NCBI GenBank assembly: GCA_004431415.1
Contig: QPMI01000582.1
Span: 1-64,000 of the forward strand
From: Cyanophora paradoxa CCMP329
Lineage: Eukaryota > Plantae > Glaucophyta
Reading direction: 5' to 3'
Length of the DNA: 64,000 nt
Every line of letters starts with the position of its first letter. Position 1 is the stretch's first letter. Below, piece by piece: positions 1-29,500 of this stretch. The position numbers and the translations under genes are program-made. The notes under the pieces were generated by a model. The model searched no databases. It worked only from the letters and a program-made list of their open reading frames with translations, and was not told the DNA's origin.

Positions 1-1
1 T

Positions 2-3000: not shown

Positions 3001-6000
3001 ATCCTACAATTAACTTCAACTTTTCAGCCTATAATACGTGGGGGCTGAGTGTGAACTTTTCATGAGCCAAACTTCACAGCAACATTTAACTGTGTTTTTC
3101 GTCGCGAAATTCACAGATACAGCACCTCCAAATGTAGAGAACGTTTTATCTTTGAGTTATGGAACCACAAATTGGAGCATCAATAAATGGAACAATGGTG
3201 CGACTTGTTATATTCAGGTTTCTAATGGGGTTGGAGCAGCAGGATTAGGTGAAAGCACTTCACCAAGTAACGCAAAAGCAGAAATTACATACTCCGAAAT
3301 GACGACATGGACACTCTACGAAGTAACAGTCTCTCCTTCCACTGTTACATTTGGGATCAATGGTAGCAATAGAAGTGTTGAAAATGTTACAAAACATGTT
3401 CCCCAATAACCTTGTTACTGAAAGTCGTATTGGCTCTTCAACCTCCAAACAAGATTTAGCAGAGCTAATAGTGATTATTAAACCAACAACAGAAATCGTG
3501 AAGGACAACATACGAAGTTATCTCCTCCAAAAATACGGCTATCCTGAGCCATTGGACAATCCTTTCGCCAGTGACCCTAACAAACTTCTTCTCCAAACAA
3601 ACAGCCTTCGAGTAACAGGAAGTCTTATAGCTAACAACCTCCAATATACAGCACCAGCACCAGGAGGTGGTTTTATTATCAAAGATTTCCAAACAAGCTC
3701 AAGTCTTCAAGAGGCAGAAATAACTGCCATCAATGCCCAGATTACACAGATACAAGAAAGCATAGACAGTATCAATACCAATATAGAACCTTTAACCACT
3801 TCCAATGTAGTTCACGAATGGGTAGCTCCACTGACTGCTTCCAATGTAGTTCAGGAATGGATAGCCCCACTCACCTCATCTAATGTGGTACAGGAATGGA
3901 TAGCCCCGTTGACTTCTTCTAATGTAGCTCAAGAGTGGATAGCCCCATTGACTGCTTCCAATGTGGTTCAGGAATGGATAGCCCCATTGACATCTTCCAA
4001 TTTAGTTCAAGAGTGGTTAGCTCCCAAGGCTGATACAGAAACCGTAAATTCCCGAATAGCCCTGCTGACATCTTCCAATACAGTTCAGGGCTGGTTAATC
4101 CCCAAGGCTGATACAGAAACCGTAAATTCCCAAATAGCCCTGCTGACGTCTTCCAACACAGTTCAGGGCTGGTTAATCCCCAAGGCTGATACAGCAGCTG
4201 TAATTCCCAAATAGCCCTGCTGACATCCTCCAACACAGTTCAAGCTTGGTTAGCCCCAAAGGCTGAGACTGCCTTTGTTAATTCCAAGTAGCCCTGCTGA
4301 CCTCTTCCAACACAGTTCAGGGCTGGTTAGCTCCCAAGGCTGATACGGCTACAGTCAATACCCAAATATCTCCACTCACATCCTCAAATATAGTTCAGAG
4401 CTGGTTGAGTGACTATTTGCCCAAATCAGGAGGGACTATCACATCCAATCTTTCTGTTTCGGGCAGCCTTTACACAAATAACATAAGAAGTGGTAGCCAA
4501 TCCATAGACTTGGTTCTAATCCAAAACTTGATACCTCCCTGGAACGCCTTTCAGCATACACAAATCCACTGTCTACACCAAACTGTGTATTCCACTGGTA
4601 TCCTTTAAATGAGCCATCAGGCACAGCAATACCAGAACTTACCAATAGGGCATCTGGGCAACCCAATGCTTTGCCTTCTTGGCTTAAAGTGTCAACTGGG
4701 GCCTTCGTGCTGAGTGCCTCTTTAATCAATGGGAATAAACTATTTGGGGTTACAGGGGTAACAACCTATTTGGCGCAACCAAGTCCCTACATAGCAAACC
4801 CATTCAGCAATGGGATGACAATGTTCTCTGTGAGAAGGAACTATTCAACCTCTGCAGTCCTTCAGCTCATCTAACCATTACAGTGACCCTACATCAAGTA
4901 GAAATATAAGATTCGGAACCACAGGAGAAACATCTATTGGAATAACGAGTTATCAAACAAATGGAGTGTATCAAGCAACTTCCACAGCATCCACAGCCAC
5001 GAGCTTTTACAACAATTGGACTTTGTTTGACTATCATGTCACTTCAACCGTAACCACAGTAGGCATCAATAGTGTTGATTTATCCCCCACATTATCTGGC
5101 AACTACAATTTAAGTGAAGTGGCAAATCTCACAATCCAAAAGATTGGGATAGAAAGCTTCCAAGGACAAATGGCAGAAATAATCATTTACAATCGGGCTC
5201 TATCAGCTGATGAGAAGGGCTTTATCCGCTACTATCTATCACAAAAGTATGGTCTGAGCAACCCAATTCCCCAAATCAGCCCAGCCTACTCCTCAAATGA
5301 GTTCCTACAGGTGTCCACCCCCAATCTTATACTTAATAAGCTGACTGTGAATAGCAATGTAGCCTTGCCAAATATCCCCACATCAAACATTGTTCAAAAC
5401 TGGCTTCAACCTTACACCACTTCAAATGTCGTTCAAGCATTGATAGCTGAAAAAATTAATCCACAACTTGTTACTTCAAATGTTACAAGGGACTGGCTCA
5501 GCAGCTATCTGCCCCGAACGGGAGGTACAATAACATCAAACCTTGTAGTTTCAAGCAACCTTTACACTCCTTCAATCATAAATGGTGAGCAGTCCATCAA
5601 GTTCTATCCAATTTCTACATCGCCACCAATTGACCAGCTCCTTTCATATACTAATCCACTTTTCACATCCAATTGTGTGTTCCACTGGTACCCAAATTCA
5701 ACTGATGTCAATGGCTCGTTGTTAGAAACAATGGTCAACAGAGCAGAAGGGCTCCCACTTGCCTTACCAAACATGAGCCCTGGGTTCACTTTATCCAAGA
5801 ACTCAATAAGCAGTGGGACAGCATTGAATGGAAATAAATACATGGTCAGCACAAGTAGTTCTTCTGGATATCGGCATCAGTACACCACAGCATTATCAAA
5901 CATTTTTGCCAGTGGCATGACTGTATTTTCAGTGAGAAAGCACACTGCCACAGGTAACCAATCACATTTTGTAGTTACCAATGATGACACAAGTGACCCT

Positions 6001-6800
6001 ACATACGGGAGATATATCACACTGGGAGCAGTTAATGGAAATTCCCTGGTATTATCACTTCCACATTAACACAAGTCTCAACAACAAGCTTCTTGAATTC
6101 TTGGGGGTTGTTCGACTTTCAATTAACCCCTACAACACTAACTATGGGGTTGAATGGCGCAGATGTATCTCCCTCAATTACTGGAAGCTTCCTGTGGTCA
6201 AACACGCCAACCATAAAAATAAAGGAACTCTCATTCACTTCCTATGTAGGAGAGATAGCCGAAGTTGTAATTTTTAATCGGGCTTTATCTCCAACTGAAA
6301 AGAGTTTCATGAGATATTACTTTAAGCTCAAATTTGGGCTTGACTTTCCATACACTTATCCCGAAACATACACTCAGCTCTCAGCAAATCTTTTGGTAGA
6401 CAAGCTCAGTGTGAACACCAATGTTTACGCAAGGTCTTTCTATGAGGTGGCCACTGGAACTACAAATAGTCTAAGTAAAATCCTGACATGGAATGAAATC
6501 AGGCAAAGATTTCTATCTGGGACTTTCCAGATGAGTATAGGACCCCTCAACGCCAATAGCCGTGGAGAAGCCACTTATATTTTAAATTGGAACCCAGCAT
6601 TCAACACGAAACCACCTGTCATTAGTTTGGTAATGGAAGGAACCCCTGTGACAACCCAAGCGCTTGGCTATAAATTTGGATTATCGAATTCAAGTTCTAC
6701 CTCGTCCACAGTTCATGTTACCTTGCTAACTGATGCGACTGCTACAGCAAATACGACATATACCTTCACAATTCACTGGACAGCATATGGAATTCCGTGA
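2..6800 (+). pseudogene. Giant fibre/receptor-binding protein with four LamG/ConA-like domains and a C-terminal H-lectin/gp53-like domain, broken into many ORF fragments
   Basis: Fibre motifs LLPLVTNTKDLGIRTRQW (~135-190) and YLP(L/K/R)(T/S)GGTIT x4 (~1589, 2656, 4414, 5506). LamG-type C-terminal motifs: LCEFYCFTRALT, LAELIVI, GQMAEIIIYNRALS, GEIAEVVIFNRALS. Terminal AFNTKPPVI...IHWTAYG. Consecutive ORFs overlap in different frames (decay or sequencing indels). Confidence 0.7.
3790..4410 (+). repeat. Coding tandem repeats in the fibre gene: about six 39-bp units (LTSSNVVQEWIAP), then about five 75-bp units (KADTETVNSQIALLTSSNTVQGWLxP)
   Basis: Seen directly in the DNA and in ORF 3351..4214. 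Confidence 0.9.
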
Positions 6801-6839
6801 TGAAGCTTTATTTTTCTATCCTTCTTAATAAAAGAAGTA

Positions 6840-7685
6840 ATGGGCGAATATAATCGAGTCCAATTACCAGTTTACGCATTGGGGAGTCCAGCAATTCATT
6901 TTAGACAACATGAAGTGTCTGATGAAGTTCGTGGAATGGAATCAACAGAACGGGCAAATTCAGGTAATGCTTTTGACAAGAATAGTATGATTCGTGTAAA
7001 AGAACTGAGAGCTGATAAAAATTCGGGAGTGGTGAAAACAACTCAACTACTTGTAACAAATGCGAATTTTCAATCAGCAAATGGACAACCTGATGCGTAT
7101 GGTGTAGATATCAAAGCATTTGAATTTGACAATACAAGGGCTGCTGCTGTTATAAGATCAGGAGGAGCAATAATTGGTGGTGGCTGTAGAGTATCGGGAA
7201 TGCTTGGCTCTTCTGCTGCCTTTAATGATTTTCCGGACACTTTACCTGAACATGCTGATAATCCCCAAAGAATTCGCATGTTTCTTCCATGCGGGGATTC
7301 CCCGTATGCTTTTGGTATCATTAGAGCTAATGTAAATACGCAAAATGCCACTCAACCCCAAGGTATTGCCGGACCATGGAAATTGGCTAATCAGCTTCTA
7401 CCAAAGGCAATGTATTCTATGTGTCGCTCTCAGAATGGAGGATTAGAAGGTTATACTTTCTTTGTTCAAGCAGTAGGCCATGGTGGGCGTGGATGGATCA
7501 CAAGAAATCCTGCTACACAACCAAACAGTTTCGATTTTTGGGCATCAGAGGTAGGGGGTTATGATATTTTAATTTTTGGATATCGTAATGATGAAGCAGC
7601 ATGGGCTGTTGCCAACTGTATAAATCCTGATTCGCAAGTATCGAATTTCTATAATGAACCATTCCCGAATGATCCCATTCCGTAA
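6840..7685 (+). CDS. Viral structural/fibre-like protein, paralogue 1 (281 aa)
   Basis: Intact ATG ORF. Shares KELRxDKNxGVVKTTxLLVTNANF, SGGAxIGxGxRVxG and the terminal DP(I/L)P with the next ORF. C-terminal LP...VQ...GYRND pattern of phage/giant-virus fibre tips. Confidence 0.7.
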   Translation: MGEYNRVQLPVYALGSPAIHFRQHEVSDEVRGMESTERANSGNAFDKNSMIRVKELRADKNSGVVKTTQLLVTNANFQSANGQPDAYGVDIKAFEFDNTRAAAVIRSGGAIIGGGCRVSGMLGSSAAFNDFPDTLPEHADNPQRIRMFLPCGDSPYAFGIIRANVNTQNATQPQGIAGPWKLANQLLPKAMYSMCRSQNGGLEGYTFFVQAVGHGGRGWITRNPATQPNSFDFWASEVGGYDILIFGYRNDEAAWAVANCINPDSQVSNFYNEPFPNDPIP

Positions 7686-7704
7686 TTATGTTTCAGTATA
7701 TTAA

Positions 7705-8550
7705 ATGGCAGCACCAGCACCACCAGAGCGCATTTTAACAGCGCAACTATCATTAGCTGCTCCAGCTAACCACGTCTTACAGCATGCTATTATTGATAAT
7801 ATTGATGGTCTCGAATCCACAGAGATAGCCCCAACCCTAAATACTTTTGGGGACACTCACATGCTAAGACTAAAAGAGTTAAGATGTGACAAAAATAATG
7901 GGGTCGTTAAAACTACTAAACTTCTTGTAACAAATGCGAATTTCAACGCATTTCATGGGGATCCTGATAGTTACAATGATGATAACAAGGTAACCAATTT
8001 TGCCTACGAAGCAAGAAGGGGAGCAATTAAATGTAGGTCAGGAGGTGCCTATATTGGAGATGGTTTAAGGGTTGGTGGAATTATTGGAGCGCCTTTATTA
8101 ATAAATGATCAACCCAATCCAGATGATCTGAATACAAGAATCAGGACATATGTCCCGGGAATGAATGAGCCTTACATTATCAAAATCAACACAATCATTA
8201 TCAACCTTCAGACTGCTGTTCTTGATGTTTTAGAGCCTTTGGGAAATCATTATAGATATACTGAGACGTTGCCTGCTGATATTTACGCATTATGTAGAAG
8301 AACAGATGGAGCAAGACCCCGTATTACTGTCCAAGTAGTCCCAGTAGATAATTTCGGACTTGCTTTCCATTCACTGCCACTTCTTGACACACAAGATGAC
8401 CAATATATTATAAGAGCTACCCAGCAAGGGACTTACACAGTGATAATGTATGCTGAAAGAAATGATGAAATAGCCAGAGGAAATAGATATGGTCAATATC
8501 TAACCACAAATTTATACAATCCCATTGGAGGAAGTGACCCTTTGCCATAA
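7705..8550 (+). CDS. Viral structural/fibre-like protein, paralogue 2 (281 aa)
   Basis: Intact ATG ORF 19 bp after paralogue 1, with the same shared blocks. C-terminal LPADIY...ITVQVVPV...YAERND. Confidence 0.7.
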   Translation: MAAPAPPERILTAQLSLAAPANHVLQHAIIDNIDGLESTEIAPTLNTFGDTHMLRLKELRCDKNNGVVKTTKLLVTNANFNAFHGDPDSYNDDNKVTNFAYEARRGAIKCRSGGAYIGDGLRVGGIIGAPLLINDQPNPDDLNTRIRTYVPGMNEPYIIKINTIIINLQTAVLDVLEPLGNHYRYTETLPADIYALCRRTDGARPRITVQVVPVDNFGLAFHSLPLLDTQDDQYIIRATQQGTYTVIMYAERNDEIARGNRYGQYLTTNLYNPIGGSDPLP

Positions 8551-14700: not shown

Positions 14701-15679
14701 CGAGGACTTTTGGCGTTGCATCGAAAAGGAGAGGTGCGCACGGTCCTTGGTCTTGCTCGTCTGAGCCGTGGAGGAGAACGAGTCGATGACGGGACCGGCC
14801 TTGCTCCAGACCTGCACCTTGAGCGAGTAGTGGAAGCCTGAGGCGGCCCGTATCGCGTAAGCTCTCAGATGCTACGCCTGGCGAACCTCGAGTCCCCAAC
14901 ATGCGCACCGGGTTTGATGGTCTGCTCGCCGAGCGTGTAGTGCTCGCTCTTCTCGCTGGAGGCGACGAGCGTGCAGGCCGTGAGCGCCTTCTGGGGCTGG
15001 TAGTACACGCCGCACTCGTAGAACCAGGCTGCAGCCGCGCAAGGAGATGAGGACGTGATCGCGAGGAAAGAAAGGGCGCCAAACGCGCAAGAGGATGCAC
15101 CCTGGTAGTAGTTGATGAGGCAGCCAGTGCAGCCGTCGTCCGTGTAGTTGTTCAGCGGGTTGATGGCGGGGGCGCTCCACGACGGGGTCGCCTTTGTGTC
15201 GTCGCTGCACAGAGGCCGTCAGATAGTTCAAAGCGAATCGAACGAGCGCAAGAGAGACTCTGCACCTCGTCGAAAAGTCGATTGCGAGCTGCGAAGCCGG
15301 CTCGGGATCGACGGCGAAGAGCCGAGCCGCGGATGAGGAGCTCGACGCCTCGAGGCCCGCCTGCGCGAGCAAAGCCAGGTGTAAGCGGTGGCGCAAGCTT
15401 GCCAGCGCGCGCTCATTGCACTTGCGCGGAGCCGCACCGAGTTGACAGCCGTGACCGTGGCGAAAATCAGCGTGTAGGGGTTGAGACCGCAGACATAGGT
15501 GTAGCGGCCGTCGGGGCTGTTGCCGTCGACGGTGGAGAGGACCGAAACTAACGGGCCCGACGTCGACGCGACCGTGACGGTGTAGCTGTCGGGCATCGGA
15601 CACGCGTGAGCAGCGCGAGCTCGAGGTGTGCGAGCGCGCAAGGGCGCGCGACGCACTGGCGGATGAACTCGGCGCCAAA
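8736..15679 (-). CDS. Host multi-exon fibronectin type III repeat protein, downstream part (truncated by the viral insertion)
   Basis: Many short GC3-rich exons with FN3 signatures (GLTKNAKYELRFIACN, GLSPKTEYTYSVVA, GLDPGYFYDV, LQPGHNYKFAIQATN, GLNPYTLIFATVTAVNS). They are separated by short introns with GTGCG-type donors and CAG acceptors. Confidence 0.85.
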
Positions 15680-15992
15680 CGTAAGGAGCTGTTTCGCATG
15701 TCGCAGACGGCCCCGGACGGACCTCGACGGGCCGAAAACGGCGCGACCTTTTGGACATCCCGCTAGTTCGCGAGCTTTAACAATGGATGGAATTTGAATT
15801 TTGAACACGGCCGTGTCACGGCGGCTATCAGCCGGCTGAGTTCGAGTTCGAGCTGGCTAGACCAAATTCTATATCCCCCCAAGCCATCTCCCCCCCCTTC
15901 CAAGCCACGGCCAGCTGCAGCTAGATTGCGGCCAGCCACGGACTTGCGCGGGAAAAGCAAAAGCGCTTATAGCTTAGCGTTCGGCGATCGAG

Positions 15993-17749
15993 ATGCCGCT
16001 CTCTGTGCTGTCTGCCAAGGTCGGCTCAGCGTTCGGTTCCATTAGAGCGTGGCTGGGCGGCGCCAGCGATGGCAGGCCGCGGCACGGCCAGATTGGCGGC
16101 AGCACCTGCGGCAGCCAGGACGACCTCGGCGAGGACGTGAATCCAGACGACTTTGGCGACGCAGCTTTGAGCGAGCAAGTCGTTCAGCCTGCGCATGCAG
16201 CGCCAGCTGCGCATGCGACGGCCGCGGTCGCGCTGGCGCCTCCCGCGGCGGAGCCGGCGGGCGGGAGCGACTCCCCACAAGTCTCGCCAGTACGCTCAGA
16301 GCTCGAGCAGAGCCCCGGCAGCGGCTGCTGTGAGACGCCAGGGACGCCTTTGGGGGGGGGTACGCCTGTACAGCCGTGTACGCCGCCTGTCGCAGCTGCC
16401 TCATCAGCGACCCCCGTGTACACGCCTGATCGCCCGCGTCGCAAGCGGGTAGTAGCTGCGCCCTCGCAATCGCAGCCTTCGCATGATCAGCCGGCCACGC
16501 CTCCACGCACGCAGCCGCCGGCGGCAGCGGCCTCGCCAGCGACCCCCGTGGACATGCCTAAGCGCGTGAGTCGCAAGCGGGCAGCGGCGGCGACCTCCCA
16601 GCCTTCGCCCGCGGCGGCACCGAGCGAGCAATATGAGGATCCCTTCGTTGCCATGGAGCGGTATATGGACGATCCCTCTGTCGCGCCGTCGCCTGCCAGC
16701 TCAGCCGCGAAGAAGCCAGCCCCGAAGAAGCCCGCCACGTCCACCAAGCAGCAGTGCAAGCGGCGCAAGTGCGATGTCGAGATGACGGGCGAGGAGGAAG
16801 ATCGATTCACCCCCTGGGACAAGCCCGGGCGGCACCGCTTTCGCATCGAGGAGGAGGACGCCGCACTCTATCGGAGGCTCACCGGCTGCAAGCGGGTTTC
16901 CGATGCGGTTCGCATGGCGTCCAAGCTCCTTGAAGCGATCGAGTACCTTCAGCAGCGTGTGCGCGCGCCGTTTCACGCCGCCGTGCGCTTCGCCCGCAGC
17001 TTGCCTCGCTGATTCGGGCCGCAGGATGTCCTAGACAAGGGTCTAACTGGCGCGGAGCTCGCCAATCAACTGAAGGCGAAAGTCGACGTGTTCCTCCGTG
17101 CACCGGCGCAGCGTGAGGAGCTCCAACAGAAGTGCAGCTCCCTGGAGCGGGAGCTCCCTGATCTGCGGTGGGCCAACAGGGAGAAGCAGCGGCAGATCGC
17201 TCAACGGGAGGAGAAGATCGCTCAGCTGGAGAAGGAGATGATGCAGCTCAACGCCAGTCTGGTGAGCCCGCCGGCCGCCGCGCCGCCCGCGCCGCCGGCG
17301 CCCGCAATGCGCTGCTGACGGCGGTCCCTCCGGCGCCCGCAGAGAGCGACTCGGGTCAAAAACCTCGAAGAGGAGTGCGAGGAGCTGCAGAACCAGAACG
17401 CTGCGCTGCAGACGAAGGTGGATGACTTGGAAAACAAGGTCCGCGATTGCCCACACGCGTGCGTGCGCCCGCTGGCGCGTAACGCGGCGCGGCGCAGGTC
17501 TCAAGGATGAAGAGGAATTGGGACTTGGAGTTGGAGCGTGAGGCGAAGGTGTGGCGGAAGGAGGAGCGCATGTACATAAAGGAGGTGGAGGAGCTGGAGG
17601 CCGTTATCGAGTATCTCTACATGAGGGACGTGCTCATGCGGGAACCCCGGGGGCCTAGGGTCGCAGGGTGGGTCGCCGCGGTCCAGCAGCTACACGCTGC
17701 TGTGCCGCCGGAGACGTCGCCTTTCGAGGCGCCCGCCATCGGGCGCTAG
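15993..17749 (+). CDS. Element gene A: Pro/Ala-rich N-terminus, possible ribbon-helix-helix motif, long coiled coil (spliced)
   Basis: ORFs 15993..17012, 17088..17318 and 17507..17749, plus a small exon near 17343-17438, can be joined by short GT-AG introns. Heptad-rich E/K/Q/L sequence. Confidence 0.6.
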
Positions 17750-17946
17750 CCCCGGCCCGCTCGCTTCGTCCTGCATAGCTAGAGCTCTCATCGGATGAGA
17801 AAAATTTGTGTTCCTTTTGCGCATGCGTCGCCCACACGACAGCCGGGCGGGGACGCGGGGCGCGGCTGGGTTGGCTAACTGTGCGTGCATCCGGAGCCTC
17901 CGAGCAAGCCTAGCCTATAAGCTCGGCGACGCTGAGCTAGGTGCGC

Positions 17947-18081
17947 CCGGCGCGCCTGGTAATCTGCTCGGGAAGGTCGGAACGGCTTGGGCACGGAACC
18001 GGGGTCGGCCGCAAAGGCGGACCGTGCCAGACCCAATCGGCGCTGAGCTACGCCGGCGCGCCTGGTAATCTGCTCGGGAAG
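17947..18081 (+). repeat. 29-bp exact direct repeat pair
   Basis: CCGGCGCGCCTGGTAATCTGCTCGGGAAG at 17947-17975 and 18053-18081. Confidence 0.9.
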
Positions 18082-19284
18082 CTCGGGATGAGTCAAGGCC
18101 TCGCACCTGGGGCTGGCAATCCATGCACTGCGGCAAGCAGCCGCTGCCCCACCGACCTCGTCTCGCAGAAGCGGGTCACGGAGATGAAGGAAGACCGCGT
18201 GAAGCGCCGCGGGCGCTCTCGTGGCATGCCGGGCCGGGCCGGGCGTATGCGTACCCGGTTGGCCAGCGGAGGAAACTCGGCTGACTGAGCGGCTCGCGCT
18301 TTCGACAACGTGGCACTGTGGCACTGTAGTACACCTGGCGAGGCGCACGCCGCGACAACGATTCGGCGAGGCGCACGCCCTCGCCCGCGAACTTGGAACA
18401 TACGCACGCCTGCCCTGGATCGCGGACCGAGCCTCGGAGACTTCCGCCCTCTCCGAGGCTCATGGCTGAAGCTGCGATAGCATGGTGCCGGCTGGCTGAG
18501 GCCGCCCGTGCCGGAGCAGCTGCAGCCGGGGCCAAGTGGCTGGCCGGCGCCTTAAGCGCGCGGCTGCACTGCGAGCGGGGAGCTGGGCTCGCTGTCGGCG
18601 GCAATCTTATCCGCTCTCAAGGTTTCGCAAGGCTGCGAGCGCGCGGCGACCCCCGGTATCGCGTTCGCAATTTTTGATCTGCCAGGGAATCTGCACTCCG
18701 AGGCTTGCGATTGAAGCACGGCAGCCTCGTATCTTGATTAGAACTTTTTATTCAAGATGTAGAGGCGTCACACGGCGTTATTTAGTGCCCTGCACAAAGC
18801 CCCCGCGATGGGCCCATTTAACCCGTCATACCATATGACTCATCATACGCCTATACACTACGTTACAGCTAGTCTTCTGCTGACTTTTGGCCCTTCCAAA
18901 TTGGGCCCATCGCCCCAGGAGCTGGGAGACATCGAAAAAAGCTTAGAGAACCTTTTTAAAGCACTATATAAGGCCTCCTATGCAGCTGCAGGGTCGGGGG
19001 AGGCCTTGTATGGCGCGAAAATAGGCTCCCGAGGCCCCCGGACTGCCAGAGTGTCCCGGAGGCCCCCGACTGTCCCGCCAGGCGCCCCGCCCTGTCAGCC
19101 CGCCCCGCCAGCCCGCCCGCCACTCTCGGTAGTCACTGAGTGCCACGGTGCCACGGTGCCACGGTGCGCGCACGATAGCAGAATAACTAGTAAATCTGTC
19201 GTATTCAAGCCAGGTGCAGACTGCAGCTGGTGACTCTAGCTGCAGACATCGTCCGGCCGCGAGACGAGGACGCCGTCGCCGGCA

Positions 19285-19573
19285 GGGCGGCGACCGGCGG
19301 GGCGGGGGCGGGGCCGGCGGGCGGGGCGGGGCCGGCGGGGCGGGGCGGGGCGGGCGGGGGCGGGGCGGGGCGGGGGCGGGGCGGCGGGGCGGGGGCGGGG
19401 CGGGGCGGGGCGGGGCGGGGGCGGGGCGGGGCGGGGCGGGGGCGGGGCGGGGCGGGGGCGGGGCGGGGCGGGGCGGGGGCGGGGCCGGCGGGGCGGGGGC
19501 GGGGGCCGGCGGGGCGGGGGCGGGGCCGGCGGGGCGGGGGCGGCTAACGGCGGGGCGGGGGCGGCTAACGGCG
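19285..19573 (+). repeat. (GGGGC)n-like G-rich tract with G-quadruplex potential
   Basis: About 290 bp almost entirely of G runs separated by C, bracketed by a ~35-bp direct repeat (CATCGTCCGGCCGCGAGACGAG...) at ~19247 and ~19591. Confidence 0.9.
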
Positions 19574-20306
19574 CTACGCTTCGTCGTCGGCATCGTCCGG
19601 CCGCGAGACGAGCACGCCGTCGCCGCGACGCAGGCGGCGGCGCTTGCACCGAGCAGCAGCAGCAGCCCCGTCCGCCTCCGCCGCCGCCTCCGCCGCCTCC
19701 GCCGCCGCCGCCGCCGCCGCCTGCTGCTGCCGGATGCGCACCCGCTGGAAGTGCTCCGCGCACTTGAAGAGATTGTCGCCGAAATGCTCCATCTGCCCCG
19801 CCCGCCGCTGCAAGGCCGTCACGTTGTCATAGAGAGGCTTGAAGGCCGCCTCCTCGTAGAGCCCGAGGGGGTCCTGCCCGCAGAAGCGCGCCGTGCTGCG
19901 GTGCTTGCGGATCTCCGACCGCAGGTTAATGGCCTCGAGGAGGTTGTTGTGCGCCAGCGCGACCTCGAACTGCTCGTACAGCTGCTCGTGCTCGCGCATC
20001 CACGCGCGCGCGTACTCCAGCAACTGCTTGAGCTCGGCCAGCTTGTATGGCCTCACCGAGTCGCGCTCTATTGCGAGGTTGACCTCCAAAGCTGCCTGGT
20101 GGCGCCGCCTGATCTCATCCTCCTCCTCGAGCGCGCGCTCCTCGTCCGCCTTCATGCGCGCCCTGCGCTCGGCGCGCTGCCGCTGGTCCATCGCTCTCCG
20201 AGTCGCTGCTGTTGATCTCGATGACAGACGAAGTCATTGGGCGATTGCACGGCGCGTTGATGGTCTCCTCCTGGTCCTCCTCCTCGGACACGTAGTCAGC
20301 GGGCAT
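19574..20306 (-). CDS. Element gene B: helical/charged protein of unknown function
   Basis: ORF 19574..20191 has coding-like codon usage. A probable short acidic first exon starts at ATG 20306 (MPADYVSEEEDQE). Confidence 0.5.
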
Positions 20307-21178
20307 ATGCTTCGCTCCACAGCTAACATAGCTACACTGTCGATGCGACATAGCTAACGCTTGAGGCTGCTTCAGGCCCACCAGCTGCAGGGCGTTCAGC
20401 TGGAGTTGGACGTTCAGCAGTTTGCGTACCCAGTCTGGGCATGCTCCCCTTGCTTAGCGCGTCATACCCATATCGACGAGCGAGCATCGCGGCCGGCAAG
20501 GACCGCGCGGGTGGACCAGCCGCTTCGCCTAAGGTAGCTATGCATCGCAATTGCGCATTATCGCGCATGCTGGGCTCGCCTGCTGCTCTTCGGCGCCTAA
20601 CTGTCGCGGATGTGTATGCTTGCTCGCGGCGCTCGGAGCTGCCGCTTCCGCAGATGGCAGGGGAGGTACACGCGATCTTTTTTTCCGAGTTTTGAACCCG
20701 CCCGCGCGATGCAGCGACCCATCGCGCCCCGTCCCGCGGCCCAGCCCGCGCCCCAAACGTTTCCAGCGCCCGCAGCAGTCGTTTTAGAGATGGCGGACGC
20801 GTCGGTCGCGTACCAGGCGCTTATGCGGATCATCGCAGTGCTCACCCACAGCCGAAACGCCCACCTGGAACTGGAGGCGCGCGGCATTGCGTCTCCATTG
20901 TATCCGCATAGCTTAGCTTGCACGGCGGCGCTTCAAGAGGCCACCGCAGTGGCTGTGTTCCTCCAGTGCATCCTGCAGAGCCCTCCAGCTTCGCCACCCG
21001 GGTCGCCATCGGCTCCAGCGAGCCCGCAATCGCCTCAGATTAGCCCAGAGCAGCAGCAGCAGCGCGGTCGTCGCGCGTTCGGCGCCGACGTGGTATGCCG
21101 CTCATTCAAATTCGATGTCATGACTTGACTTGCCCGCGCTTACGAGTGTATGCTCTCTGCCCGGCCGCGAGCAGACGA

Positions 21179-24100
21179 ATGCAGTTCTTAATGAGGCGCC
21201 GAGCCCGGCGCCGCGGCCGGCCCCGGCCCGGCACCGCCCCGAAACGCGCTCGCGGCAAGGAAGATGTGCCGCCTGAGGAGCGGATCGTCCGCAAGGCGAC
21301 GCTCAAAGCGCGCGACGAGCGCATCGCAGTGCTTGAGGCGGAGAACAAGAAGCTTAGGGAGGAGCACCAGTCGAAGCGCGCCAAGGTCCCGCGGACTTCG
21401 GCACAGCGTGCAGCGACCATCTCGCGCATAGCTAGGCAGGTCCCTGGGAAGGGATGCTCGGATACGTCCAGGCAGCGGCGCACGCGGTTCCTCCGCATGC
21501 TGCTCTCGACGATTCTAAACGCTGCGAGTCCGGACATCCAGATCCGCCTCCCCATGTTTAAAAAGAACTTCGCGAGGTACAAGGCGGGGCGGCGCGCGCG
21601 CAGGCATATGCATGCTTATCCAGGGCGCCCCAGGAACAAAGGAGAGGAGGAGGGCGCCTATCAGAAGAGGAGGGAGGCGCTGGAGGCGGAGGCACGCCGC
21701 CTCGTGAGCATCATCGGGCCACACGCAGTGCGCGTTATTATACATAAAAAGAGCTACCGAGAATCGTACTTTAATAGGCTACAAAATCGTTGGAGAAGAG
21801 CACCTTTCTGAACCACCGTCCGCAGGCCCAACGAGCCCTGGAAACGAGCAAATCGGGTCAGCTGCAAGTGAAGAAGGCGATGAGCATCGCCTGCAGGAAG
21901 CTGCGGGACACCTTCCCCGACTGCGAGATTCTAGAGTGGAAGGACCGCCACTGCATCTCGGACGTGCGCCCTTTCTCGAATGTTTTAACCCCCCATCCCG
22001 TTCTAAACCGACCCGGGGCAGGCGACGTACTTTGAGTTCACGAAGCTCCTCAAGAAGGCCCTGAAGAAGCACTTCGTGGGGCTGCGAGCCTTCCTCCCGT
22101 CGAAGCACTGCATCACGAAGCTACGGGGCAAGGTCAACGATGACCTCGAGAAGGCGCGGCGCGCGCGCGCGGGGCGGGGGTGAGGGACGAGGCTCACCGA
22201 GCGGTGCAGATCGTGCAGATCGTCGAAACAGCGGCGGGCGTCGGCGACGAGGAGAACAAGGGCAAGCCGGGCGTCATGCTCGAGCTCTTTGTGCCTCCGT
22301 CGAGCGCAGCGCCGGCGGCGGGCGGAGAGGCGGCAGCGCCGGCGGCGGGCGGAGAGGCGGCAGCGCCGCCGCCCCGCAGAGCTGTCACGCCGACGCCCGC
22401 CCTGTCGGCCCTCATCAGCGCTTTCGTCCCGCTGCACAAGCACAGGGGGAAGAAGATCAGACCTCGAGTCCGCCTGGCGGGCGACGGGACGATCGCGTTC
22501 CGCGGGAAGAGCGTCTCCACGACCGACGGCATGACCTGCATCGTGGCAATCGTCGACGGCTACTACGTCATCGAGGAGGACGGGACGCAGGCGTACCACC
22601 CGCTGAAGGGCGTTCAGAGCTGCTACGCCCTCCTGCCCCTAATGCTCTTCGGCGGTAGCGACAGCGAGGAGAACCTGCGCCCACGCATCAAGCCCCTCGC
22701 CGACATGGTCGAGTACCTGAACGAGAACCCGCTCACCCTGATCCCCGGGTACGAGCACGACAAGCCCGTCGAGGTCGAATTCTTGGTGACGGGCGACTAC
22801 AAGTTCCTCCGCGTCCTCCTCGGCTTCGACCTGTGCCCGCACTGCGATTCTGTCCACCGACGCGGGTCAGTTCGCCGAGTCACACGCGCTGAGATTCGGC
22901 ATGGGGCTCACGTTACTGCAGGTCCGAGTGCTCGGCGGTCGAAGTCGTGCGCGCAGCAGGGCCGCGGGATCGGGACGGCCTCCCTCCAGCCAGCGAACAG
23001 AGAATCCGCACCCCCGAGCACGACGCCAACGCCCTCCTGCAGCCGCTCCCGAACAGCATGCTGCCCGTCGCTGCCGTCGAGGTGAGAAGCCCGCGACACC
23101 TCGCCTCAGCGGACGCCAACGCGCACCTCAGGTCCGGCTCGACGACGCCCTGCACGGCATCAAGAGCTGGGTGGCCGGGTTCTTCGTCTACTTCTTCCTC
23201 GCCCTCGCCTGTGGTGCCTCCGAGGACCAGCAGAAGCGCATCGAAGACCTGCAGCGTCATCTTCGCGATAAATACGCGCGGAACATCAAGTTCGAGAAGA
23301 CCGAGAACGGGGCCACCTACAAGTTCTTCCAGAAGATCTCCGCCAACACCGCCAAGAAGATCCTGGAGGACCCCGAGGCGCCCGACACCCTCTTCAGCAT
23401 CTGCTTCGGCGACAGTAAGGAGAGCTGGAGCGAGAAGACGAGGGGCATGCACGAGATTTGGCAGCTCCGCCAGATCATCTACCAGTACGAGCGGAACATG
23501 AAGCCCGACGAGGAGGCGCGGCAGCAAGTTATCGAGGCCGTCGCCGAGCTCCAGGGCCTGATGGAGACACACTTCCCGTTATGGAAGATCTTCACACGCT
23601 ACATGCACTCGACGCTTGCGCACCTCGCGTTCTGGGCGCGCGTCGACAACACGAACGCGCCCGGCCGTTGGAGCTGCGAGGTCATCGAGTCCTACATGGG
23701 CCTCCTTCGGCGCCTGCGACACACCGTCACGTCTCTCGGTGGCGGGTGGAACAAGGACCTCGACATGCTCAAGCAGATCATGACGCACCAGCGGCGGCGC
23801 CTGGCGCTGTGGATGCGGAACATGACGGAGGCGAGCGCCGGCGGGAAGGACGCTGCCCACGCCGAGTACGACGCGCCCGTCGCCGCCAAGGCCTGGCCAG
23901 ATGGGCCCTTCATCCCCCGACCTGCGGCCCGTCCCCACCGGTCAGCGGCTATGCAGGGCGAAGGGGCGGCGGCGGCGCCGCCGGGGGCGAGGAGGTGGCA
24001 GCGGTGCCCCTGCCTGCGGACGAGGAGGAGATCGACGAGGATATTGAGCTGCAGGAGGGGGATCCGGTGCCGGAGGACGAGGTGCCCGAGGAGAGCGGGG

Positions 24101-24261
24101 ACGAGGAGGAGGAGGAGGAGGAGACCGCCGAGTACGACGCCGAGGCAGAGGAGGAGGCGGAGGAGGAGATGGAGGCGGAGGATGAGGGCGCCAACATGCT
24201 CGATTTCGATGATAGGGCCCTAGCAGAGGTTCTAGCAGACGATCTAGCGGAGGGGAAATAG
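21179..24261 (+). CDS. RAG1/Transib-like DDE transposase (spliced, about 6 exons, acidic tail)
   Basis: Motifs collinear with the RAG1 core: GRPR AT-hooks; LAGDG (D at 22483); LLPLMLFGGSDSEENL; TGDYKFLRVLLG (D at 22795); CPHC; DDALHG (23141); TRYMHSTLAH (H at 23606 and 23621); GRWSCEVIES (E at 23687). Compare RAG1 SCDG, KPLCLMLADESDHETL, TGYDEKLVR, CTLC, IDALHC, TNYFHKTLAH, GAWASEGNES. Confidence 0.85.
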
Positions 24262-24300
24262 ACGAAATGGATTTGGACCAGACATAGCGCACCTTGTAAC

Positions 24301-26330
24301 CTAGATAGTGCGATTCTCAGTAGCAGCTTCACGACTTTGCCCTCTTGCGCGCCGCCACCGCGGCCGCGAGCTGTGCCGCGCGATCCTTCCTGCTGCAGGA
24401 TTAGGCGAGCAAGTAGCCGAGCGGGGGCGAGGGGGAGGGGGCGCACTTGGGGACCGAGGCGGATGCGGCGGGGGCAGGTAGGGCGGCAGCGGCCGGTGGG
24501 CAGCAGCAGCAGGGGCCGACAGGGCGGCGACCGGCGGGGCGGGGGCGGGCGGGGCGGCGGCGGCGGCGGCCGGCAGGGCGGCGGCGGCGGGGGCCGGCGG
24601 GGCGGCGACGGCGGGGGCCGGCAGGGCGGCGGCGGCGGGGGCCGGCAGGGCGGCGGCGGCAGGTTCTGAAGGGGCTGCTTCGGGGACAGGCGGCGCCTTG
24701 GCGACGGTGTTGGCGCCGGCGCGGCACCGGCGCGGGCGCTTCACGGGGACAGCCGCGAGGGGCCCCGCGAGGCTGGCGATGCGCTCGCCGTCGGGGCCGT
24801 ACTCGTAGCTCGGAAGCTCGAGCGTGACGTGCCCACCTTTCCTGCCCGAGCGCTTCGTGGCCACGATCCGACCGGGACCTGCCGCGCCCAAGGAGCAGAG
24901 CTTCGTAAGCGAGCGGCGCGGCGAGGGCGGGCCGGGCGCACGCTCGTCGAACTGGACGACGTCATGGGAGCCCGTGTGGCGCGGCACGATTAAGCCGCCG
25001 TACGCCTTCTCGACGGTGACGGTCTGCATCTCGCTGTGCTTCCGGATCGCCTTCCCGTCCGCGTCCCGCTTGCAGACGCGCTTGGACGCTTGCGCCACGC
25101 CGGAGGGACCGAGAACAGCTGCAAAGAGGTCGGAAAAAGAACAGCGAGCGGGAAAAAGGAAGCGGCTTCCACCAGCAGCGGTCTCGCGGTCCGGAAGCTC
25201 GATAACGAAGCGATTCGCCGCCGGCAGCTTGTCAACCGGGATCGGCTGGCCCGTCTTCGGGTCGATGGGCGTGGCGACGTGCGCGACCTGCGCCACGATG
25301 TTCTCCTGCGATGCGCACCGTTAGAGGATAGGAAAAAGAACTTCGAACGAGTCATAAGAGCCGCAGACCAACATTGCCGGCCCGGCCACCGGGATCTTGA
25401 CGTTGACAAGCTGCGTCCCGGTCTTCCGGCGCTTGAGGGCGTTCGCGGCGGCGTCCTGAAGGTAGCCAATCGCCTCCACGCGCTCCTCCGGCCTCGACAG
25501 CGGCCGGAGGAAGCACGCCATCTTCTTCTTCGCCACTCGCTTGAGCCTCGCGTTGAAGGCGAGGGCGACGTCGAACTGGAAGGAGCCGTCGCCCGGGAAC
25601 GTCATGATTTGCTTACAGACGTAGATGTGGGGATCGGCGTGGTTGAGGGCTTTGTACTCGTCCGCGGCCACCACCTTCGCGGGTGCGTGAACCTGCGCGC
25701 ACGGGCATCGGACGCTGGAACGGGGCGCGGGCGCGGCGGGCGGACCGTCACGTTCGAGTAGTAGATGAGGTGGTTTGCGATGGCCACGGCTGCCTGCTCC
25801 CCGTCTGCCTTGATGATCACGCTGCCGAGCCCGCAGTCCTTCACATCGGAGTCCTCCGGGCGCACGAAGCGCCGAAGGATGACGCCGTTGACGGAGTAGT
25901 TGAAGTCGCCGCGCTTCGCCTTCGTCTGTGTTGGGAACTCGCCCTCGACTCGCGCCAAAATCGTTTCACCTGGGCGCGGGAAATGGAAGGGCTTCGGGCG
26001 AACGACGCTGAGTTCTGGACACAGCTGGGTGTCTGAGCTAACTGAACAGATGACGAAGTCGCCAAGGCGAACGTGGTAGGCGCGGCCGCTGGTGTCCAGG
26101 CAGCGGACCGTTGCCGCGGGGTGCTCGCCCTTGAGGATGTCGAGGTCAGGGAGCTTGGGCTCCTTCGCCTTGCGCGCCTGCTGAGTGATCTTGTTGACAC
26201 GCTTCATGTTGCCCTTGCCGGCCCACGAGCTGCTGCTGTCGGGTCGCTTGCCGTGCCAGCGGTGCCGACGTCGGGCCTCGTCGAAGCCGTCATCCCAGAG
26301 GCTGGGTTCCTTTCGCTTTGACTGCTTCAT
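24301..26330 (-). CDS. Element gene with an N-terminal BAH-like domain, convergent with the transposase (spliced)
   Basis: YHVRLGDFVIC...ILARVEGEF...VILRRFVRPED...IYYSN...EY...IYVC follows the BAH consensus order. ORFs 25602..26330, 25321..25674 and 24301..25296 link through short introns. Pro/Ala-rich tail. Confidence 0.6.
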
Positions 26331-26579
26331 GCACGGCGGCGTGCAGGAATGCTCGCGCTCGGGCGTGCGCGATGGCGGGAAGCTAGCTAGTCCGGCCTAG
26401 CCGAGGGAAGCTGACTAGCAAGCCGGCCTGCTGACCGTTACTGTGACCGTTGTGGCCGCGTGTGTACGCCACTGTGTACGAGGCCAAGTTCGAGCTCAAG
26501 TTTGCGCTGGGCTAATTTCATTGGCGGAAGAAGTTAACAATGGGCGGGGCGTGACGCAAACTCCGTTCAGTTTGAAACG

Positions 26580-29500
26580 AAAGTCCGCGGGGAGGGTCCA
26601 GGCGACGTCCGCGCAGAAGGCGGTGCGCGGCGTGACGACGACCTCGAAGCCTCCCGGCGCGTTGCCGGGGACGGAGCAGCTGACGGAGCCGGTCGTGCTG
26701 TCGCCCACGCTGTTCACGGTGACGACTTGGACCTGAAGGATCGCGTTCAATGCTCATGCAATGATACATATTCATCGGGTGCTTCGGACTTCATTCGCTA
26801 TAATATCAAAGTAAAGATCTAGACGCACGGTGTAAGTGCGGTTCGGCTGCAGGCCCGTGGGCGAGTAGCACGTGGGGGTCCCCGGGGTGACGTCGATCCA
26901 CTGCGAGTTGAAGACGGTCGGCGTGCCGCCGCTGTACTTCAGCTTGTACTTCGTGATTGCGCTGCCGCCCGTGCCGGGCTGCGCGCGCGTCAGATACAGC
27001 AGCTGACGCCGGCGCCAGATCTGGTTATAGACAAGCATCGATCCAGTTTCGCTTGTGCGCGTGCGCACCGCATTCCAGCAGACTTCGAAGGTGCCGTCGA
27101 CGTCGTTGCTCGACGATGCCGTGCCCGAGCAGTACGGAGACGGCGCCTGCGGCTTCGTCGCTGCGAACGCGGGCGTGAGGGACCGCACGGGAGCTGGCCG
27201 CCCGAGCCCGAGCTCGGCGCAGCGCATGCGCACCGGGGAAGTCGTAGGTCATGGTGGCTTCGGCGCTGCTGTTGCCGGCGTCGTTGTACACGACGACCTT
27301 GAAGCTGCCGTTCCCGCCGGGCGCCCCGGTCTTGGTGCTCTTGTACTCTGTGTCGGCGTCCGCGCTGACGGCGGAGCCGCCGTCGATCTTGTACGAGCTG
27401 CGATGGGCTCGTGATCAGGTAGCAGTTTTAACAGATGAGAGAAAGGAAACGCAGGATGGCAAGGCGCACGCGACATCGAAGTTGGCGTCGCCGGGGCCGC
27501 CGGCGTTGGGCTGGGTGGGCGTCTTGAAGAAGACGTCGACGGCGCGCGACGTCGCGTAGCTGTCGTCGCCGACCTTCTCCACCTTGGTCTGCGTCGCCGC
27601 CCCGGGGTTCTTGTCTGCGCCCACCCTCGGATGAGCGACGAAGGGCGGCCGAGACCCAGAGAGGATCAAAGGACACGTACACCACTGGTCGTACTGCGTG
27701 GTCTCCGGGTCTCCTGTCTTCGAGTCCCCGTTGGTGCAGGTGACCTTCACGCCGTAGTTGCGCGTGCCGGCCAGAAGCGGCACGACGTCGGTCGGCACGG
27801 CGGTCTTGACGACATTGGCGCTGCTAAGCGGCGCGCTGACTGTCCAGCTCTTGTCGACGACGGTCGAGTGACCGGACGGAGGAGCGGGGCCGGTGAAGGT
27901 GATGGTGCAGTGCGTGAGGGCGGGGCCGCCGGTCTCCGCCGGGGGCTTGAAGGTGACCTCCGCAGCCTCCGGGTCCGCGGCCGTCGAGTAGGCCGACAGG
28001 TCCGTCACCTTCCCGGGAGCGGTGCTGTCGGTGCTAAAAGAGGCGGGGTCCGACGTGGCGCAGTAGCGCGGCGTCTTGGTCGCGTCGTCGGCGGTGTTGC
28101 AGCAGGTCACCTGGGGTCGATCGCGAGCAGACGCGGGTGAGACCGAAGCGGAGCAATTGCAAGGCCCAGTTCTTGCGGGGACCTGACCGTAATAGAGTAC
28201 GTGGTGTAGCGCGTCAGATTCGGGATCGTCGCCGTCCACGGGGCTGCAGCGTTCAGGTCGGACGCAGAGCCGACGGCGACTCCGTCGAGCGTCGCAGTCG
28301 CTGCAGTGAATCACGAGTGCGCGTGAGAGGAATTCGAAATCGAAGCGGGCGGCTCATGATCATGCGCAGACCCGTGCAGGACTTGTAGCTGAGGGCGTCG
28401 CTCGCGCCGATGCCGTCGTAGTCGGCCACGGTCCAGGGAACGGTGATCGAGGTCGCCGTCGTGGTCACGCCCGAAGTCGTGATGGTCGGCTTGTTGGGGG
28501 CATCGGGGCTCGTCTTGACGGTGCCCGACACGCTGCTCGAGAGGTCGCCCTGGTTCGTGCACGTGATGGTGTAGCTGTACGAGGTGTCGGGAAGGAGGCT
28601 GCTGTAAGTCTGGGCGCCCCCGGTGGCAGAGCCGGCGGTGGCCGCGCCGCCGTTGAACACGACTGCGGCTAGTGTAAGAAGTAGAAAAAGCGAGAGCGAG
28701 CTCTGTGCTGCGCACTGGAGCAGCTCTTGTAACCCTGGCCGCTGACTCCATCCTTGTCCTGGATTGCAGTGCCGCCCGTGATCGGGCCGCTGGCGGGGCT
28801 GTACGTGATCGTGGCAGAGTTTGCTGTTGCGGATGTTGTCGCAGTCGGTGCGCTCGGAGTCATCGCTGCGGGAGGCGCGGCGTCAGTCTGATCACTGCGA
28901 ACTACCAGCTGCAGCGAGGAGAAGAGCGCTAATAGTGCATGGTCGATCTAACGCAGCACATGCGCACCGGGGGTCCGGAACGTTGCCGCCTTGGCGCCGG
29001 TGAGGCCGGCCTGGCTGTTGTACTGCGGGAGGTTGGTCGCGCCCGCCTGGGCCGTGTACTGCGTCCAGCACTTCAGGTCGGCGAAGGAGGCGGTGCCGCT
29101 GCCCGAGAGACTGGTGATCGTGACGGACGCCGACGTGGCCGCCGGCGTCCCAGTCGCCGACGTGCCCTCGAAGAGTCTCACCTGCGCGCGACCCGAGAGA
29201 GAACGGCCGGTTACTCGGGAGGCGCTCGACGTCGACCCAACGGGTGCGAACCGCGGCGTTCGCGTTGAGGGCCACGCCCTTGTTGACGTCGCGGCCCGTG
29301 TTGGTGACGGAGAAGGGCACGGACGCGGAGGCCTTCTGGGCCGCCGCGCTGGCCGTGATGCCGCCGGTGCCAACCGTGAGGTCCGCGACGCTGGGCTGGA
29401 CCGCGAGAGTGACGAAGTCCGCGCTGTTCGCCGTCGAGGAGACGACTTTGCCCGACAGCGTCGTGCACGATATCGTCGAGTAGTACATCTGCGAGGTCCG

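Follow-up and report, generated by a model that had tools for sequence, protein, structure and literature searches.

Transposases with a C(2)C and an H(3–4)H motif between the second catalytic aspartate and the catalytic glutamate are common to EnSpm, Mirage, Chapaev, Transib, RAG1, Plavaka, ESTA and Lanisha, a group that Kojima has named the CMCT clade (Kojima 2025, PMC12730594). Elements of this clade produce target-site duplications (TSDs) of 2–5 bp and mostly end in CA..TG, although some, PlavakaA among them (TGT..ACA), do not, and one of its lineages, ESTA, was recognised via an HHpred match to RAG1 (PMC12730594). The published hallmarks of Chapaev are C(2)C, LH and H(4)H motifs, TSDs of 3–4 bp and CAC..GTG ends (Zhang et al. 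2014, PMC4079192). A RAG1-like/RAG2-like (RAG1L/RAG2L) transposon with CAC terminal inverted repeats (TIRs) and a 5-bp TSD has been described in the pelagophyte Aureococcus, and the same study describes Transib-like proteins of bacterial, fungal and plant origin (Tao et al. 2022, PMC9435367). Here we describe an element at positions 15680–26579 of a 64,000-nt stretch of Cyanophora paradoxa DNA (EukProt EP00741), referred to below as the window, in which all positions are numbered. The interpretation that we favor, at a probability of roughly 0.78, is that this element belongs to a recently active, multi-copy family of DNA transposons of the cut-and-paste kind in C. paradoxa and encodes an orphan DDE transposase of the CMCT clade with a C(2)C...H(4)H zinc module.

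Insertion into a host exon

15680–26579, no strand assigned: whole mobile element, ~10.9 kb, ends 5′-CGTAAGG...TTTGAAACG-3′, without TIR
15677–15679: left copy of a putative 3-bp TSD, AAA, based on restoration of the host frame
26580–26582: right copy of the putative 3-bp TSD, AAA, on the same basis
15586–15656, minus strand: host intron in an FN3-like gene, GTGCGT..GACAG, just downstream of the insertion site

The termini of the element are CGT...ACG with AAA on either side, and the insertion breaks an FN3-like host exon in frame. On the minus strand, the right flank encodes ..VAWTLPADF (TTT at 26582–26580), and the left flank continues from TTT-GGC.. as FGAEFIR into the host intron (15656–15586) and then into HYTVTVASTSGPL...GLNPYTLIFATVTAVNSV. 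Deletion of 15680–26579 together with one AAA/TTT yields the host frame ..WTLPADF|GAEFIRH.., which shows an FN3-like strand pattern (W..P...G..I..Y.V.V...Y..GL.P.T.Y.F.V.A.N). Pfam support for FN3 is confined to the adjacent host open reading frame (ORF), which has a weak fn3 match (E 0.001).

The right end is set independently of the host frame. An RNA contig from another copy (presumed-RNA run X15) matches the window through 26579 and then continues into unlike sequence (TACACGGG..), a high-depth repeat DNA contig stops at 26578, and a low-depth contig of unique flank starts at 26551, one k-mer upstream. Since sequence is common to the copies through 26578/26579, a 5-bp duplication of AAACG can be rejected. 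The left end was placed from the continuity of the host exon, and both it and the 3-bp duplication derive from a single copy. Within those bounds, the ends and the duplication are as originally predicted.

The absence of TIRs resembling recombination signal sequences, also part of that prediction, was borne out. In register, 16 of 35 bases match between the two ends (p about 0.02); local alignment of the ends is no better than random; and neither TIRs nor subterminal repeats emerged from local alignment, BLAST-short or k-mer searches.

Copy number and age of the family

In the DNA run, contigs of the element have word depths of 966–1945 compared with 78 in the unique flank, a rough 12- to 25-fold ratio that is not equal to the copy number, and depth climbs toward the right end of the element. 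In 1.84e9 representative proteins searched by phmmer, and in three further searches by word index, the window transposase matched only paralogues of its own genome; all are EukProt EP00741_Cyanophora_paradoxa models with names of the form tigNNN_gNNN.t1. These transposase models sit on at least 13 different C. paradoxa contigs. Together, the depth ratios and the gene models on 13 contigs suggest ~15–25 near-identical copies. A self-BLAST of the 64-kb window revealed no second copy within it.

Long consensus DNA contigs show no base substitutions relative to the window, only 1-bp gaps. In one model, P0011 (tig00021758_g23402.t1), the transposase, beginning at ..EALEAEARRLVSIIG, is joined to the N-terminus encoded by cargo gene A (MPLSVLSAK..), which implies a copy with an internal deletion of ~5.4 kb and a few substitutions. 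The existence of deletion derivatives follows from this fusion and from the gradient in depth along the element. The family is thus a young one with non-autonomous derivatives, and it appears to be currently active, as its copies are near-identical, one lies in a coding exon and they are transcribed.

Homopolymer gaps of 1 bp, in runs of G or C, separate the window from public contigs at 21220, 21226, 23982, 24251, 24422, 24497 and 24647. Every aligned contig has an extra G at 24251 and 24497; at 23982 the extra G occurs in a single DNA contig, with 1141 of the 5559 depth, and in one contig each of the presumed-RNA runs X15 and X17. The published C. paradoxa assembly consists of PacBio contigs with 67.6% GC, and its genes have 9.2 short introns on average (PMC6704402). 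The gaps in the window, which break ORFs, are either PacBio assembly errors, the likelier case, or copy-specific frameshifts.

The transposase gene and its catalytic motifs

20790–24287, plus strand: transposase gene, about 9 exons and about 944 aa (model P0010), located by tblastn of P0010 on the window
21577–21633, plus strand: sense intron GT..AG enclosing GRPR, from an X15 RNA contig and models P0007 and P0010
22210–22866, plus strand: exon with the first D, an SDSEE block, the second D and C(2)C
22471–22500, plus strand: first D, RLAGDGTIAF
22783–22806, plus strand: second D, LVTGDYKF
22834–22845, plus strand: CPHC, C(2)C
22867–22921, plus strand: probable sense intron GTCAGT..TGCAG, from reading frame and gene models
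23083–23131, plus strand: probable sense intron GTGAGA..CTCAG, from reading frame and gene models
23132–24287, plus strand: last exon, with DALH, H(4)H, the catalytic E, a helical C-terminal domain and an acidic tail
23144–23155, plus strand: DALH
23606–23623, plus strand: HSTLAH, H(4)H
23672–23692, plus strand: catalytic E, SCEVIES

The transposase consists of an N-terminal region with a coiled coil, a DDE core and an acidic tail. The spliced plus-strand gene encodes the motifs in the order D, D, C(2)C, LH, H(4)H, E, as had been predicted, and the same motifs are found in the full-length EukProt model P0010, which also has GGSDSEEN between RLAGDGTIAF and LVTGDYKF. The SDSEE block gives a weak Pfam match to DUF1280 (E 0.28).

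A GRPR motif had been counted among the RAG1-like features of this protein, and it did not survive splicing. It lies at 21623–21634, inside the sense intron at 21577–21633: record 8 of the X15 RNA contigs omits 21575–21631, which slides to the GT..AG intron, and models P0007 and P0010 read KKNFAR|NKGEEEG at this point. An RNA contig thus documents sense splicing in the 5′ part of the gene. The introns at 22867–22921 and 23083–23131 were placed from reading frame and gene models, and the former is not among the 15 splice joints listed from contig alignments. As assembled, the stop codon is at 24259–24261; with the read-supported additional G at 23982 and at 24251, the last exon becomes a single ORF (23132–24287) that ends ..EIDEMDLDQT* with its stop at 24285–24287.

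A RAG1-like predicted fold in a sequence orphan

Search queries were single exons or, at full length, gene models taken from databases, P0010 among them; joined chains were translated only to follow reading frames. None of the Pfam models of RAG1 domains matched the exons or P0010 at E≤10, nor were the Pfam families Transposase_21 and Transposase_24 or CACTA termini, both traits of EnSpm/CACTA, found. An ankyrin match (E 0.022) in the PDB phmmer searches of transposase pieces and partner exons was judged spurious.

Structure-based comparisons were more informative. A single-sequence AlphaFold2 model of the segment following C(2)C (P0001:14–335) has a mean predicted local distance difference test score (pLDDT) of 52, with residues about 60–190 at 56–82. 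Foldseek against the PDB gave no match at E≤0.001, and RAG1 and BbRAGL were the rows of highest probability. Of 48,161 PDB representatives, only RAG1 and BbRAGL match strongly in structure; the match to RAG1 790–951 falls on the last transposase exon. An ESM Atlas shape search returned a RAG1_ZnH2 cluster (template modelling score 0.61 by target, 118 residues, root-mean-square deviation 3.4), and ESM sequence features returned RAG1_RNase_H, ZnC2 and ZnH2 clusters at 0.89–0.94. The Pfam families among these features are of RAG1 type, plus a DUF1280 cluster, and not of CACTA type. On these models, the transposase is structurally RAG1-like, with a predicted catalytic core of RNase H fold and a ZnC2/ZnH2 module. 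By eye, we take the H(4)H spacing and the W..E..ES block of the protein to resemble RAG1 as well.

A convergent partner gene

24301–26330, minus strand: partner gene, 5 exons, about 600 aa, with four RNA-supported GT..AG introns
26330–25746, 25692–25369, 25305–25173, 25118–24942 and 24878–stop, minus strand: partner exons
25693–25745, 25306–25368, 25119–25172 and 24879–24941, minus strand: partner introns GT..AG, in RNA contigs of two to three runs

Joined from the ATG at 26330, the five partner exons form one ORF of about 600 aa. Because RNA-supported introns connect this single frame, the partner gene is real and expressed, and it is convergent with the transposase gene. Its stop is at 24301–24303 as assembled and at 24401–24403 with the read-supported G at 24497. 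The distance between the two stop codons, predicted at ~40 bp, is 39 bp as assembled and 13–113 bp with read-supported corrections. A DNA contig of depth 1141 spans 22339–24549, from the transposase through the junction into the 3′ end of the partner; most copies with a transposase therefore carry both genes in linkage.

The partner had been described as BAH-like, a description for which we found no tool support. Its exons have no Pfam match at E≤10 (BAH, Kelch/PHD or any other family), no relevant PDB phmmer match and no usable neighbor among ESM features. Fold models are of low confidence (AlphaFold2 pLDDT of 36 for exon 1, ESMFold2 below 50), too low to judge the fold, and co-folding partner exon 1 and the transposase core gave an ipSAE of 0.00, which is not evidence either way. 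By eye, we consider the strings YHVRLGDFV, ILARVEGEF, VILRRFVRPEDS, LIYYSNV and IYVCKQIM to be compatible with a BAH-like β-barrel. From this pattern, a BAH-like partner is a tentative proposal to which we give somewhat less than an even chance.

Two RNA contigs (X15 record 10 and X17 record 15) run from the partner gene past 26579 into 0.9–1.8 kb of unrelated flank. They suggest that, at other loci, transcription reads through from adjacent DNA into the element, or that the contigs are chimeras.

Placement among CMCT transposases and alternative explanations

In the literature cited here, RAG1 and Transib appear to be the only members of the CMCT clade with solved structures, so any member of the clade would be expected to match RAG1. 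Because the motifs are clade-wide and the structural match to RAG1 is uninformative in this respect, the motif list and the fold indicate CMCT membership and not an affiliation with RAG1/Transib. The transposase is an orphan in sequence and therefore represents a deep, undescribed lineage of the clade that is not demonstrably the sister of RAG1. Several points weigh against this assignment to a cut-and-paste CMCT family. Pfam searches with raw ORFs, clean exons and P0010 at E≤10 gave chance-level matches only and no transposase family, PDB phmmer searches with transposase pieces and P0010 at E≤10 matched no chain, and the relatives found by phmmer among 1.84e9 representatives are same-genome paralogues only. 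A single copy supplies both the left end and the length of the TSD, neither excision nor an empty site has been observed, and the ends are CGT..ACG without TIR, whereas CMCT elements mostly have CA..TG or CAC..GTG.

Other CMCT lineages offer partial parallels. EnSpm/CACTA, Plavaka, ESTA and Lanisha share with the Cyanophora element the C(2)C and H(3–4)H signatures that fall between the second D and E, and have 2–5 bp TSDs. CACTA elements carry TnpA as an accessory ORF. Multi-gene elements with accessory ORFs are known in CMCT lineages (TET/JBP in fungal ones), and ESTA, too, was recognised only through a structure-based match to RAG1 (PMC12730594). The element differs from EnSpm/CACTA and these other lineages in having neither CACTA or CA..TG termini nor a Transposase_21/24 match, and in its glaucophyte host. 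As far as testable, its accessory genes show no relation to either TnpA or TET/JBP.

Within the clade, a Chapaev/CMC-like position is the one we lean toward, at less than even odds; a Transib/RAG1-like position and a separate branch are each doubtful, and equally so. A Chapaev/CMC affiliation, which is at odds with the original prediction, is about as likely as the RAG1/Transib affiliation that it proposed. The transposase has CPHC, DALH and HSTLAH in the order of the Chapaev hallmarks C(2)C, LH and H(4)H, and the apparent 3-bp TSD, seen in one copy only, falls in the 3–4 bp range of Chapaev (PMC4079192). The duplication points, if anywhere, toward CMC/Chapaev, and the ends fit neither CMC/Chapaev nor RAG1/Transib. 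It is possible, at rather worse than even odds, that the element is a divergent Chapaev or another CMC member with degenerate ends, in which case its extra genes would be either fragments captured from the host or, as in CACTA, a second ORF resembling TnpA. The range of TSDs in the clade (2–5 bp), its occasional non-CA ends such as those of PlavakaA (PMC12730594), the weak DUF1280 match and the DUF1280 cluster among ESM neighbors are consistent with this. The termini of Chapaev, however, are invariably 5′-CAC..GTG-3′, the one consensus described for it in that paper is 2.3 kb and encodes a transposase only (PMC4079192), as opposed to 10.9 kb with three extra genes here, and no sequence similarity to the Cyanophora transposase is detectable among the 1.84e9 representatives, where animal Chapaev transposases are presumably present; the CACTA Pfam families do not match either.

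The original prediction placed the enzyme instead in the RAG1/Transib lineage, as a sister of RAG1L in which a BAH-type reader, tail-to-tail with the transposase, replaces the Kelch-PHD RAG2L, and in which end recognition and stagger differ. We regard this as improbable. It does gain from the restriction of ESM features to RAG1-type families and DUF1280, from the D-D-E order with a zinc-binding C(2)C...H(4)H as in RAG1, RAG1L (ProtoRAG BbRAG1L, AanRAGL) and Transib, from the way H(4)H is spaced and a W..E..ES block, both RAG1-like by eye, from a convergent, RNA-supported second gene as in ProtoRAG and vertebrate RAG, and from BAH-like strings picked out by eye in the partner (YHVRLGDFV, ILRRFVRPEDS, IYVCKQIM). 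An algal host is also shared with AanRAGL, a RAGL transposon from another unicellular alga (PMC9435367). Against these stand the Pfam (E≤10), PDB phmmer and ESM-feature results, none of which shows a BAH signal, together with the failure of AlphaFold2 (pLDDT 36) and ESMFold2 on the partner, which is not Kelch/PHD by any test; RAG1 Pfam models without a match; and the intronic position of GRPR, which leaves the mature protein without a GRPR of the nonamer-binding-domain type. RAG1, RAG1L and Transib have CAC-initiated, heptamer-like TIRs and 5-bp TSDs, whereas the ends here are CGT..ACG without such TIRs and the flanks are AAA/AAA with in-frame restoration of the host in the one copy. The motifs are shared with Chapaev (PMC4079192), and convergent genes with overlapping untranslated regions (UTRs) are common in this gene-dense genome (PMC6704402), so that the partner's location in the 'RAG2 position' carries little weight. 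The fuller proposal of a first RAG1L/Transib-sister lineage in Archaeplastida, with asymmetric non-CAC ends, a 3-bp stagger and a non-Kelch, possibly BAH-like, chromatin-reading partner bound where RAG2 binds, is less probable again. Finally, a host gene cluster copied by segmental duplication and not mobile at all would suit the absence of TIRs, the visibility of both flanks in one copy only and the several non-transposase genes. It is strongly disfavored by the sharp right boundary shared by copies whose flanks differ, by the host exon broken in frame with a 3-bp repeat, by about 15–25 near-identical copies on many contigs and by the DDE transposase fold.

The original prediction was thus largely correct in its observations and too specific in its interpretation. 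Its undescribed RAG1/Transib-related lineage is a real transposon with a RAG1-like predicted fold, with motifs that are clade-wide and not specific to RAG1/Transib; its 'different end chemistry' was pure conjecture. Splicing of the genes from RNA, which it had proposed, succeeded for the four partner introns and the sense intron at 21577–21633 and left two further sense introns to frame and models.

Antisense RNA and cargo genes

22402–24292, minus strand: spliced antisense RNA over the transposase gene, in two to three presumed-RNA runs
22402–22462, 22536–22596, 22675–22736, 22850–22911 and 23071–23126, minus strand: antisense introns 1–5, GT..AG
23249–23316, 23404–23452, 23558–23623, 23714–23788 and 23922–24292, minus strand: antisense introns 6–10, GT..AG
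15993–17749, plus strand: cargo gene A, a P/A-rich N-terminus followed by coiled-coil segments (ORFs 15993–17012, 17088–17318 and 17507–17749)
19574–20191, minus strand: cargo ORF B, 205 aa, helical, no family

The ten antisense introns are absent from the DNA run, and the antisense RNA is abundant, with a contig depth exceeding that of the partner. Two of its introns (22850–22911 and 23071–23126) overlap the sense introns at 22867–22921 and 23083–23131 as 'mirror introns'. A protein-coding role was rejected, as the antisense strand offers only shadow ORFs without a start codon and the plus-strand ORF carries the RAG1-like motifs. The RNA is either a long spliced 3′UTR of the partner or a separate antisense transcript; overlapping UTRs of neighboring genes are frequent in C. 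paradoxa (PMC6704402). As both sense and antisense splicing are seen, both strands must be transcribed, and control of the transposase by antisense or double-stranded RNA is plausible. Cargo gene A and ORF B are the two ORF groups that bear out the predicted additional cargo.

A working model for the family is that the ~944-aa DDE (RNase-H-type) enzyme would bind two dissimilar element ends, excise the element and reinsert it with a 3-bp stagger. The ~600-aa product of the convergent gene may have an accessory role in an element that also carries two coiled-coil/helical ORFs, and an RNA spliced across the transposase gene, either the partner transcript or a separate antisense RNA, might dampen transposase expression.

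With this element, the transposase clade from which RAG1 arose gains a glaucophyte branch that is an orphan in sequence. Its combination of features is unusual (neither TIRs nor CA..TG ends, a presumed 3-bp stagger, several cargo genes and an antisense RNA that is spliced across the transposase) and therefore makes it a useful outgroup for asking which properties of RAG1, among the zinc module, the accessory subunit and end recognition, are ancestral to the CMCT clade. Should the partner turn out to be an essential subunit that binds chromatin, it would parallel RAG2 independently; were the transposase also a sister of RAG1L/Transib, recruitment of a chromatin reader to a RAG1-type transposase would have happened more than once. 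At a practical level, the element explains why a number of C. paradoxa genes, spread over at least 13 contigs, are mis-modelled.

Repeats and base composition

The element contains G-rich low-complexity arrays of GGGGCGGGGC-type with periods of 8–24 nt at 19248–19588 and 24467–24723. The latter encodes the Ala/Pro-rich tail of the partner, and all short-read contigs break there. In the apparently non-coding middle of the element, a repeat of 34–54 nt is present in two copies (17927–17980 and 18038–18086) with a 34-nt core that is 97% identical. The GC content of the window is 58–70% between about 8 kb and 62 kb and falls to about 40% in positions 1–8000.

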